Source: Orbicella franksi (taxonomy: Eukaryota). Taken from it: a DNA stretch of 64,000 bases. Positions within the stretch are counted from its first letter, which is position 1; every line of letters starts with the position of its first letter. Positions 24,950-27,900 of this stretch are shown piece after piece. The position numbers and the translations under genes are program-made. The notes under the pieces are model-generated. The model saw nothing but the letters and a program-made list of their open reading frames with translations. It did not search any database and had not been told where the DNA came from. Location: assembly GCA_964199315.1 (NCBI GenBank), contig OZ116704.1, forward strand, positions 31,062,001-31,126,000, in the 5' to 3' direction.

Positions 24950-27900
24950 CTAATTACCTTTAGCCAAGTCCAAGGTAACATCATCACCGATGAGTACAAA
25001 TGGAGCCCAGTACATGACATCGCTAAATTTCTCAGACTCTCTCAGACACTTCATGGCTCGGTTCAGGGATTCACTGGCACTTCTTCCTTCCGCTAGGTGA
25101 AGGTAAAAACTCTTCATGAACTCCAGAGTGGCTTTGTCGTCAATTGCCCACAAAGACACAAGAACACAACGAGCACCGGCACCCAAGAAGGCTCGTGCAA
25201 TGCCAACCACACCCTCAGCCTTAATCTCACCACGACCACTATGGCAACAACTTAGCACAACCAGTCTTGCTCGCATTTGAACTCCCATCACATCACTCAT
25301 TGTTAGCAAGAAGTCTTCCTTACCAGGCTTCGGGGATGCTCGAGTAGGGTTTGGTGCCAAAGCAATTTCTCCTGTTTCCATTCTACCATGTGCTGCAATG
25401 TGCACCAAAGCAACTGAGGAAAGTCTTCCCAACACTTGAGCTTTTGTTGCTTCTTTTCCAGTGAGGGGAGCAGTGTTGAGTATTTTCCCAATCATCTCTA
25501 CTTCTATCTTTGCAAATGGTAGCTTTTCTGACGTTAACCCCGGATAACCGACTTCCTCTAAGCAGGGATCACCCACGAGCAGCGCCCCAGACTTTTTGTG
25601 GTAATCTGGTGAACAATCCTTGATCAACTTCAAACTATTCAATGACGGAATGACCCGGATTTTGAAATACTCGCTCAAGTACTTTGAATTAGAATCCATG
25701 AATGCAGCATAAGGAGCCAAGCACAATGGACCTTCGGGAACAAATATCACTTCATTGCCATTAATCAAGTCTTTGATGGGGCTAAAGATGACGTCATACA
25801 ATGTTCTCAAACCATTGGAATCAAAGTGCGTGCGTTGGGATATGGTTTGATCCCTCTTCTTTGACAGGTCGCTGTCGATTTTCCTATCCAACGATCGATC
25901 CTCGCATTCCACACCACGTCCGACACCAATTTCCTCACGAGTAGTGTTAATTAAGGACTTCAACACACTGGTCGCAACAATCCTCGAATTATTATCGCTG
26001 ATTTCTTTTCTTCTTAACTGAACATCTCCATTGTGAATAATCCAGAAAATTAGTTCTCTTTCATGAACTGCCATAAAGACTGTATTCGATGAAAGGCAAC
26101 TTAATGTGTCGCAAGTAATTTTTTCCTCTGTATATGGTGTTTTCGTTTCGTACTTTGAATACATAAGGTCTCTCAGAGCTTGTGCACGTCCTTCTTCAAC
26201 AGCAAACAAAGCCTCAAATACGTCACCTTGTTTCAACATTAGGCGCCATAATCTAGTATAAGGCGTTTCATTATCATCCCGGTAGCTAATTGTCCACTCA
26301 TCTTTACCTTGCAGATGCTGCCTAACATCATTGAACAATCGCACGCTAGAACGATAGCAATCAAGAGCCTCATTTATAGAACCTTGAGATTCAAAGCAAA
26401 TACCAAGATTGCAATACGAGGCACCTTCTCCAGCCCTGTCTCCCACTTCTTTGGCAATTTTTAGATCCAGTTTATGATACTCGATGGCTTTTTTGAAATC
26501 TCCCAGACTGTGATAGGCGTTACCAAGATTAGCATACGACGCTCCTTCCCCAGCCCTGTCTCCCACTTCTTTGGCAATTTTTAGATCCAGTTCATGATAC
26601 TCGATGGCTTTTTTGAAATCTCCCAGACTCTGATAAGCGTTACCAAGATTAGCATACGACGCTCCTTCTCCAGCCCTGTCTCCCACTTCTTTGGCAATTT
26701 TTAGATCCAGTTCATGGTACTTGATGGCTTTTGTGAAATCTTCCAGACTGTCATAGGCGTTGCCAAGATTAGCATACGACTTTCCCTCTCCAGCCCTGTC
26801 CCCTACTTCTTTGGAAATTTGTAGATCCAGTTCATGGTACTTAATGGCTCTTTTGAAATCTCCCAGACTATGATAGGCGTTGCCAAGATTAGCATACGAC
26901 GCTCCTTCTCCAGCCCTGTCTCCCACTTCTTTGGCAATTTTTAGATCTAGCTCATGGTACTCGATGGCTTTTTTGAAATCTCCCAGACTGTCATAAGCGT
27001 TGCCAAGATTAGCATACGCCTTTCCTTCTCCAGCCTTATCTCCCATTTCGTTAGCAATTTTTAGATGACGTTCTTGGTACCCGATGGCTTTTTTGAAATC
27101 TCCGAGACTGTCATAAGCGTTTCCAAGATTACCATACGACGCTCCTTCTCCAGCCCTGTCTCCCACTTCTTTGGCAATTTTTAGCGCACATTGATGGTAC
27201 TTGATGGCTTTTTTGAAATCTCCCAGACTGTCATAAGCGTTGCCAAGATTACCATACGACGCGCCTTTTCCAGCCCTGTCTCCAACTTCTTTGGCAATTT
27301 TTAAATGACGTTTATGGTACTCTATAGCTTTTTTGAAATCTCCCAGACTGTCATAAGCGTTGCCAAGATTGCCATACGACGCACCTTCTCTAGCCCTGTC
27401 TCCAACTTCCTTGGCAATATTTAGATCTAGTTCATGGTACTCGATAGCTCTTTTGAAATCTCCCAGATTTCGATAAGCGATGCCAAGATTACCATACGAC
27501 TCTCCTTCCCCGGCCCTGTCTCCCTCTTCTTTGGTAATTTCTAAACGACATTTATGGTACTTGATCGCTTTTTTAAAATCTCCCAGACTTTCATAAGCGT
27601 TGCCAAGATTGCCACACAACTTTCCTTCTCCAGCCCTGTCTCTCATTTCTTTGGCAATTTCTAGATGACGTTCATAATACTCGATGGCTTTTTTGAAATC
27701 TCCCAGAATGTGATAGGCGTTGCCCAGATTACCATACAACGTTCCTTCTTTAGCCCTGTCTCTTACTTTTGAGTCCAATAGATGCTAGAATCACAGAAAT
27801 ATAATTATACTGATATTAATTCAAGGGTGCTACCAATCAATAGACTCTTCTTTTTCTTAAGGGTGGCACGATACAAGGCTATTCACTACCTATTCACAGA

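Follow-up and report, generated by a model that had tools for sequence, protein, structure and literature searches.

Diversified and conserved slots in the repeat arrays of two tandem TPR-CHAT genes of the coral Orbicella franksi

We analyzed a stretch of 64,000 nucleotides (nts) from the stony coral Orbicella franksi (contig OZ116704.1, positions 31,062,001 to 31,126,000), called the window below, with position 1 as its first letter. Two long open frames lie on the minus strand of the window, at 24950-27778 (gene A) and 46838-49483 (gene B). Both encode an N-terminal array of tetratricopeptide repeat (TPR) units followed by a single C-terminal CHAT domain, and gene B lies about 22 kb from gene A on the same strand; the two genes are tandem paralogues within the TPR-CHAT (TTC28-like) family, which is expanded in corals. 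Counting the residues of each 40-residue unit as slots 1 to 40, we found that the codons of slots 8 and 18 underwent repeated replacement, at a rate above that of silent sites, once units and genes had been duplicated, and that the residues at the same two slots were conserved between orthologues of gene A.

The two genes and their repeat arrays

The stretch 26324-27763 of the minus strand divides into exactly 12 in-frame units of 40 codons, from A1 at 27763-27644 to A11 at 26563-26444 and a degenerate unit behind them. Tandem Repeats Finder detected a period of 120 in both genes, with 11.3 copies in gene A and 9.5 copies in gene B, and the unit boundaries below follow the unit table. The frame of the large exon of gene A opens at a splice acceptor (ttctag, followed by CAT) at 27784, and its stop codon is at 24950-24952. 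The open reading frame (ORF) of gene A matches the Pfam families TPR_12 (9e-97), TPR_7 (9e-91) and CHAT (3e-56), the last of which (PF12770) covers positions 4-289 of the 289 in the profile, i.e. its full length.

24950..27784, minus strand: gene A, large 3′ exon with TPR array, linker and CHAT (ORF and translation, Pfam)
26444..27763, minus strand: gene A, regular TPR units A1-A11, 120 nts (40 residues) each
26324..26443, minus strand: gene A, degenerate capping unit A12
27742-120(k-1) down to 27740-120(k-1), minus strand: gene A, codon of slot 8 in unit k
27712-120(k-1) down to 27710-120(k-1), minus strand: gene A, codon of slot 18 in unit k
24983..25810, minus strand: gene A, CHAT (caspase-like) domain (PF12770, residues 657-932 of the 942-residue ORF)
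46838..49564, minus strand: gene B, large 3′ exon (ORF, Pfam; 99% identical to protein P0020)
48338..49417, minus strand: gene B, regular TPR units B1-B9
48218..48337, minus strand: gene B, cap unit
49396-120(k-1) down to 49394-120(k-1), minus strand: gene B, codon of slot 8 in unit k
49366-120(k-1) down to 49364-120(k-1), minus strand: gene B, codon of slot 18 in unit k
46871..47701, minus strand: gene B, CHAT domain (PF12770, 2e-56, residues 595-871 of the 881-residue ORF)

In the CHAT domain of gene A, the histidine H799 (in AAHG; codon 25390-25388) and the cysteine pair C846-C847 (in LSCCHS; 25249-25244) were invariant in 59 of 59 aligned homologues; by analogy with caspase-like folds they are the candidate catalytic residues. 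Between the two genes, the tails composed of linker and CHAT showed a synonymous divergence (dS) of 0.23 and a ratio of non-synonymous to synonymous rates (omega) of 0.51.

A protein search returned more than 4,700 relatives, the named ones being from stony corals (Orbicella, Oculina, Stylophora and Acropora). XP_020621599.1 of Orbicella faveolata, annotated as ‘tetratricopeptide repeat protein 28-like’ and a member of the 90% identity cluster of the best match, is about 98.5% identical to gene A. Earlier work has described the coral TPR-CHAT expansion, counting 276-362 copies per genome that lie in tandem clusters inside non-syntenic regions, and in Acropora the family occupies copy-number-variable, non-syntenic regions (PMC12314368). 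That work treats variation of copy number and TPR length only (PMC12314368); we found no site-level analysis of the coral TPR-CHAT repeats, and ‘hypervariable’ has 0 occurrences in PMC12314368. A full-text literature search for ‘TPR-CHAT’ gave, beyond the coral expansion paper, only prokaryotic work on Craspase and DdvA.

Variation, selection and conservation at the slots of the unit

The initial annotation of this DNA described a unit whose scaffold is almost invariant, even at the DNA level, and in which a few slots change. The residues it listed for slots 8, 9 and 18 of gene A and for slots 8, 18 and 19 of gene B all agree with the translation, and its assignment of slots 8, 11, 18 and 19 to TPR positions 2, 5, 12 and 13 is right, because N12-L13-G14-N15-A16-Y17 of the unit aligns with N6-L7-G8-N9-A10-Y11 of the consensus TPR. 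The invariance at the DNA level was overstated, as the mean nucleotide identity between units is 85% in gene A and 89% in gene B, with synonymous divergence between units of 0.32 and 0.19, respectively. The concentration of the variation in a few slots was borne out by the amino-acid entropy of each site in the 20 regular units of the window. Slots 18 (2.62 bits) and 8 (2.46 bits) were by far the highest, followed by slots 33 (1.69), 32 (1.58) and 35 (1.42); slots 11 and 19 gave 1.08 bits each, and most scaffold slots were in the range of 0-0.6 bits.

A similar ranking was obtained from 1,022 units of 120 homologues, using the mean within-protein diversity per slot, which was highest at slots 18 (0.80) and 8 (0.78), followed by slots 33 (0.71) and 19 (0.65), then by slots 11 and 4 (0.55 each) and slot 15 (0.54). 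Slot 18 was among the four most diverse slots in 75 of 101 proteins and slot 8 in 73 of 101. In the Oculina and Acropora proteins the trio of slots 8, 18 and 33 came out on top as in the genes of the window, and in the Stylophora protein slots 33 and 18 led and slot 8 ranked lower. Slot 33, which is TPR position 27 on helix B, takes third place in variability in several coral genera. In 862 consecutive unit pairs, the mutual information of slots 8, 18 and 33 was at most 0.07, both with every other slot and with their own counterpart in the following unit, and a search of all slots by mutual information gave no covarying structural partner of slot 33. These three slots therefore behave as free positions that are set separately in each unit. 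Slots 25, 3, 28, 9 and 32 are gene-specific, i.e. the next unit tends to have the same residue, so that they are uniform within an array and differ between genes.

For the position of these slots in the fold, we used an AlphaFold2 model, in which the confidence score (pLDDT) exceeds 90 over the array and each unit consists of helix A (slots 3-20) and helix B (slots 23-40), 18 residues each. By sequence (phmmer E of about 1e-70) and by fold (top 25 Foldseek matches), the closest natural proteins of solved structure are LGN/GPSM2 and Pins with their TPR domains, at an identity of 38-40%. In LGN/Pins the inner groove is lined by helix A (PMC6525239), and the main chain of the bound peptide is held by bidentate hydrogen bonds from the Asn of the L-G-N triplet (PMC3438535). 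This Asn corresponds to slot 15 and is kept in 19 of the 20 regular units. Across TPR proteins, variability is highest at positions 2, 5, 9, 12, 13, 33 and 34, which are concave-face positions, and HOP binds its ligands through positions 2, 5, 6, 9, 12 and 13 (PMC1261162); the initial annotation had called the concave, ligand-facing status of positions 2, 5, 12 and 13 established, in agreement with this literature.

In a helical-wheel test with 100 degrees per residue and directions measured relative to Asn15, slots 4, 8, 11, 12, 18 and 19 were all within 60 degrees of Asn15. The direction of greatest diversity on helix A was only +8 degrees from Asn15 (permutation p < 0.0002), and helix B had no preferred direction of variability (permutation p = 0.64). 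The concave set included 5 of the 8 most diverse slots (hypergeometric p = 5e-4). The variable face of helix A is thus the face of Asn15. Helical periodicity and homology suggest that slots 8 and 18 face the groove.

We then determined the selection between repeats, using the 20 regular units of the window and a larger set, to which A, B and five relatives (seven genes in all) contributed 76 units. The Nei-Gojobori ratio of non-synonymous to synonymous differences per site (pN/pS) at slots 8 and 18 was 2.2 within gene A and 1.1 within gene B, compared with 0.30-0.36 in the rest of the unit. Taken with the synonymous divergence between units given above, the latter values indicate that the scaffold is held by purifying selection and not by recency alone. 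On the tree of the 76 units, the minimum number of amino-acid changes was 29 at slot 18 and 25 at slot 8, and about 6 at a typical slot. Codon models were fitted with our own GY94 likelihood code, at fixed topology and fixed relative branch lengths; 2ΔlnL below denotes twice the difference in log-likelihood.

Omega at slots 8 and 18, F3x4 codon frequencies: 5.3 (20 units), 3.1 (76 units)
2ΔlnL against omega = 1 at slots 8 and 18, F3x4: 26 (20 units), 49 (76 units)
Omega at slots 8 and 18, equal codon frequencies: 4.1 (20 units), 2.9 (76 units)
2ΔlnL, M1a against M2a: 20.3 (20 units), 46.4 (76 units)
2ΔlnL, M7 against M8: 26.3 (20 units), 44.4 (76 units)

The background omega of the partition model was 0.37-0.45, and the scaffold as a whole was at about 0.3-0.45. 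The positively selected class (naive empirical Bayes) contained slots 8, 9 and 18. Slots 32 and 33 reached 1.2-1.9, which is over the background but not significantly above 1. Of the four groove positions named in the initial annotation, slots 8 and 18 had an omega of 3-5, far above the background and significantly above 1, and slots 11 and 19, although variable, did not exceed neutrality (0.4-1.0).

Because the unit trees are nearly star-like, we added a tree-free test on nearest-neighbour unit pairs, independent of one another and each taken from a single gene. Among the 21 that are closest, with a pS of 0.107, pN was 0.37 at slots 8 and 18 and 0.04 elsewhere (Fisher p = 6e-10), and one pair had a single nucleotide difference outside the two slots, yet differed at both. 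Along the unit, the divergence in these pairs peaked at the single codons of slots 8 and 18 (0.365), compared with 0.044 in the four codons that flank them and 0.053 in the rest.

The comparison between orthologues was made with one trio, namely gene A and the loci L001 and L002 of other assemblies, whose units correspond one to one with those of gene A. Units 1-5 group with their positional counterparts in all three sequences and thus keep their orthology across species. Units 7-11 do not resolve by position and group partly within species; they seem to derive from duplication of a block of two units (K..D / A..Q). In the 33 orthologous unit pairs dS was 0.26, and pN/pS was 0.27 at slots 8 and 18 and 0.30 in the scaffold. 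The tail dS of gene A is similar with its orthologue (0.25) and with gene B (0.23), yet the strings of slot 8 and 18 residues are unrelated between A and B and shared between the orthologues. The closest relatives of gene B (P0022, P0021 and P0028) have unrelated strings as well, so that no trio could be formed for gene B and gene A served for the vertical test. The conservation of the two residues in orthologues indicates a mode of diversification at duplication followed by conservation.

Nine sequences from independent assemblies, 98-99% identical to A or B, were used for the comparison of alleles. They differ from the window at slots 1, 4, 5, 9, 16, 21, 25, 31-33, 35, 38 and 40, and never at slot 8 or 18. 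Slots 31-33 collect 6 of the about 16 array differences between the window and its closest relatives, some of them adjacent double changes to the state of another unit (QC to ER, LA to RH), which suggests short gene conversions. In these genes, slots 8 and 18 are accordingly neither neutral nor racing at present; they changed fast around duplication and were then kept.

Two relatives differ in the number of repeats. P0125, near-identical to gene A, is without exactly one 40-residue unit (residues 356-395 of A), in register, and P0128, a relative of gene B, is without 4.5 units; these gaps are either repeat-number variants or collapses in short-read assemblies.

Upstream exons, transcription and flanking sequence

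The large exon of each gene is preceded by shorter exons, putative ones in gene B, which encode only a short helical segment.

28248..28358, minus strand: gene A, upstream coding exon (tblastn of P0001 at 100% identity; splice sites; RNA depth)
27785..28247, minus strand: gene A, intron (GT..AG) between exon 28248-28358 and the large exon
31351..31419, minus strand: gene A, further upstream coding exon, 5′ boundary not fixed (tblastn, canonical splice signals)
56173..56283, minus strand: gene B, putative upstream exon homologous to 28248-28358 of gene A (tblastn; AG and GT signals)
About 56632-56724: gene B, second putative upstream exon (tblastn)

Gene A is transcribed and spliced: the joint 27784/28248 is supported by 6 polyA RNA reads (X23) and two RNA contigs free of mismatches, and the CHAT part is present in several polyA RNA runs. 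At least one more exon lies upstream of 31351-31419. The putative exons of gene B imply an intron of about 6.6 kb, and the RNA evidence covers gene A only.

The public runs X1-X20, which hold the CHAT region of gene A, each contained only 0.38-0.60 of the sampled 31-mers, and the share in the better-holding runs is compatible with a divergence of roughly 1.5-2% from the window. The individual or species of the window may thus differ slightly from the sampled Orbicella, in agreement with the fixed differences against the O. faveolata protein. In the intron of gene A, about 45 nts at 28084-28131 had a very high RNA depth; the reads extend into unrelated sequence on both sides and their consensus departs from the window at 28108 and 28111. 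This peak looks like a short element common to other highly expressed transcripts and not like expression of the intron.

The window has about 38% GC and contains TTAGGG-type repeats. About 29 degenerate GGGTTA repeats, of the telomeric TTAGGG type, form an interstitial block at 53056-53232, within the putative intron of gene B. Just upstream of the known exons of gene A, a 567-residue ORF at 33066-34769 on the plus strand contains a reverse-transcriptase domain (RVT_1, 1.6e-29) and is probably a retrotransposon; the related loci L001, L003 and L005 are likewise flanked by retroelement ORFs. A mechanism like that of diversity-generating retroelements was set aside without a test, as the match of the nearby ORF is to the general reverse-transcriptase profile RVT_1, which is no argument for such a mechanism, and slots 8 and 18 carry residues of diverse chemistry. 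A 241-residue ORF at 20102-20827 on the plus strand has weak leucine-rich-repeat matches (LRR_9 8e-6, under the curated cut-off) and could be one exon of a different repeat protein. Positions 61409-61606 read as 198 N in a row, either an assembly gap or a masked stretch.

A candidate specificity code and related systems

We favor, with a probability of roughly 0.6, the explanation that the arrays of A and B form an LGN-like peptide channel with a specificity code at slots 8 and 18, which was diversified and then frozen. The proteins consist of an LGN/Pins-type solenoid of 40-residue TPR units preceding a caspase-like CHAT protease whose conserved His and Cys are intact. By homology with LGN/Pins, the faces of helix A would line an inner channel for an extended peptide, in which a ladder of Asn15 residues would grip the peptide backbone independently of its sequence, slots 8 and 18 would be the main readers of side chains, and slots 4, 11 and 19 would be secondary ones. 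Each array would then spell its own specificity, giving a germline repertoire of paralogue-specific binders in place of alleles with fast turnover, and binding of the ligand may recruit substrates to the CHAT protease or gate it. As judged from their sequences, A and B probably each have their own binding specificity, and the expansion of the family makes a role in immunity or in the sensing of symbionts plausible.

Homogenisation of the arrays offers an alternative explanation for the omega values, in which conversion or unequal crossing-over erases the differences of the scaffold, including the silent ones, and old residues specific to each unit at slots 8 and 18 are protected by purifying selection, so that an omega above 1 reflects an underestimated age. 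The poor positional resolution of units 7-11 of gene A across species, with their partial within-species groups, fits this account, but the positional orthology of units 1-5 indicates that the process is slow there. Also in its favor are the allele differences at slots 31-33, which resemble short tracts of conversion (switching of ELD, ERH and QCA types), the uniformity of slots 25, 3, 28, 9 and 32 in an array together with their difference between genes, and one related sequence without exactly one unit. For slots 8 and 18, however, the divergence of the closest pairs is confined to two codons, with the flanks at background (0.044 versus 0.053 elsewhere), so that the tracts would need single-codon precision, and pairs with 1-3 nucleotide differences elsewhere still differ at both slots. 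Since single-codon peaks are hard to get from conversion tracts that spare old differences, this explanation is weakened and we regard it as unlikely; even if it were true, the slot 8 and 18 residues of each unit would be functionally distinct.

An arms race of the type seen in fungal NOD-like receptors (NLRs), with arrays that are continually reshuffled, are hypervariable between individuals and track fast-evolving ligands of pathogens or of allorecognition, is to be considered as well, because selected concave sites in TPR units of high identity are the hallmark of the fungal NLR repeats (PMC4986451). The unit identity of A and B is, however, under the 85% criterion, they have no NOD domain, their orthologues keep the code at slots 8 and 18, and no change at these slots was found in the 9 near-identical A/B sequences from independent assemblies. 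The location of the family in copy-number-variable, non-syntenic Acropora regions (PMC12314368) and a possible repeat-number variant among the relatives are in favor of such a race, as are the arrays of young paralogues, of which L005 has slot 8 and 18 differences at a unit identity of 94% (nts) and 86% (residues). We consider an arms race quite unlikely; it lacks support for A and B, and could hold for paralogues whose arrays are young, such as L005. Finally, relaxed constraint, i.e. drift of exposed and functionless slots 8 and 18 on a scaffold held by folding, is highly improbable: exposed positions of any repeat protein are more variable than its core, and all TPR proteins taken together show hypervariability at TPR positions 2 and 12 (PMC1261162), but drift predicts an omega near 1 everywhere, and the two slots instead have values of 3-5, significantly above 1, between units and of about 0.3 (0.27), clearly constrained, between orthologues.

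Several points weigh against the channel with a specificity code. To our knowledge, no animal TPR-CHAT has a known ligand, substrate or activity. The groove-facing position of the slots is based on periodicity, LGN homology and published TPR geometry, not on measured solvent exposure, and TPR positions 5 and 13, which belong to the same face, fail to exceed neutrality. The hypervariable slot 33 is on helix B and has no place in the channel model. The vertical comparison comprises one orthologue trio, and the deletion of one unit in P0125 may be an assembly collapse. The unit trees are close to star-like and poorly supported, recombination between units breaks the assumptions of tree models, and the codon models were our own code with fixed topology and fixed relative branch lengths.

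Corals have hundreds of TPR-CHAT genes of unassigned role in the most dynamic regions of their genomes. Selection on two defined, predicted groove residues per repeat, together with their later conservation, makes this family experimentally tractable, as the selected residues mark where specificity should lie and which residues to swap. From the sequence comparison, each paralogue probably has a stable ligand that is worth seeking. A broader and rather doubtful extension is that the coral TPR-CHAT proteins are NLR-independent animal sensor-proteases, forming hundreds of peptide receptors per genome, in which the Asn ladder grips the ligand backbone, two to three independently varying residues per unit (TPR positions 2, 12 and perhaps 27) set the specificity and the ligand gates the protease. 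If this were true, the specificity would be predictable from the sequence and could be re-engineered.

With respect to known systems, the published coral TPR-CHAT proteins and TTC28 (TPRBK) resemble A and B in their long N-terminal TPR array and one C-terminal CHAT, and the published coral genes are tandemly duplicated as well; in human, TTC28 is a single-copy gene with a role in cytokinesis. Csx29 (Craspase), the anti-sigma factor DdvA and separase, of which the latter two are among the Foldseek structural matches, likewise combine helical repeats with a caspase-like protease whose activity depends on a partner. Their TPR parts are short and diverged, and the partner is fixed; we know of no array of near-copy units with hypervariable slots described for any of the three. 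LGN/Pins shares the 40-residue unit GD+A.EG..Y.NLGN.Y..LG.F..A...H...L.IA+E., but LGN is a single-copy protein with 8 diverged units, C-terminal GoLoco motifs and fixed partners, whereas the family of A and B has 10-12 near-copy units, hundreds of paralogues, a C-terminal CHAT and two selected groove slots.

For the contrast between units and orthologues, the nearest general framework is that of Persi, Wolf and Koonin (2016), who compared ‘horizontal’ (paralogous) and ‘vertical’ (orthologous) evolution of repeats; according to its abstract, repeat evolution is ascribed to positive and strongly relaxed purifying selection, and repeats are often strongly conserved in the long term (PMC5120217). 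The contrast between an omega of 3-5 between units and a ratio of 0.27 between orthologues is similar to that picture. That paper is a general survey; here the signal is narrowed down to two codons of each unit and has a structural rationale.

The repeats of high internal conservation (HIC) of fungal NLRs (TPR, ANK and WD; Dyrka et al. 2014, PMC4986451) are the closest in pattern, as they too consist of near-copy units with a few selected concave positions on alpha-helices, and in both systems changes of unit content are expected to remodel the binding surface. To this extent the analogy drawn in the initial annotation stands; it does not extend to the NOD domain, the 85% identity or the tempo. 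The fungal repeats have units of 42 residues that are at least 85% identical and attached to NACHT or NB-ARC, and they undergo concerted evolution with a striking polymorphism of repeat number between isolates (PMC4986451). No NOD family (NACHT or NB-ARC) was found among the Pfam matches of A or B, and the mean amino-acid identity of units is 0.77 in A and 0.81 in B, below the criterion of 85% over at least 100 residues, with L005 at 0.86. In A and B, units of 77-81% identity partly keep their positional orthology, and orthologues retain the residues of the variable slots. What is known from fungal NLRs, namely near-copy repeats in which positions on the binding face are selected, is thereby extended to an animal protease family, with a tempo unlike that of fungal NLRs, namely diversification at duplication and conservation afterwards.

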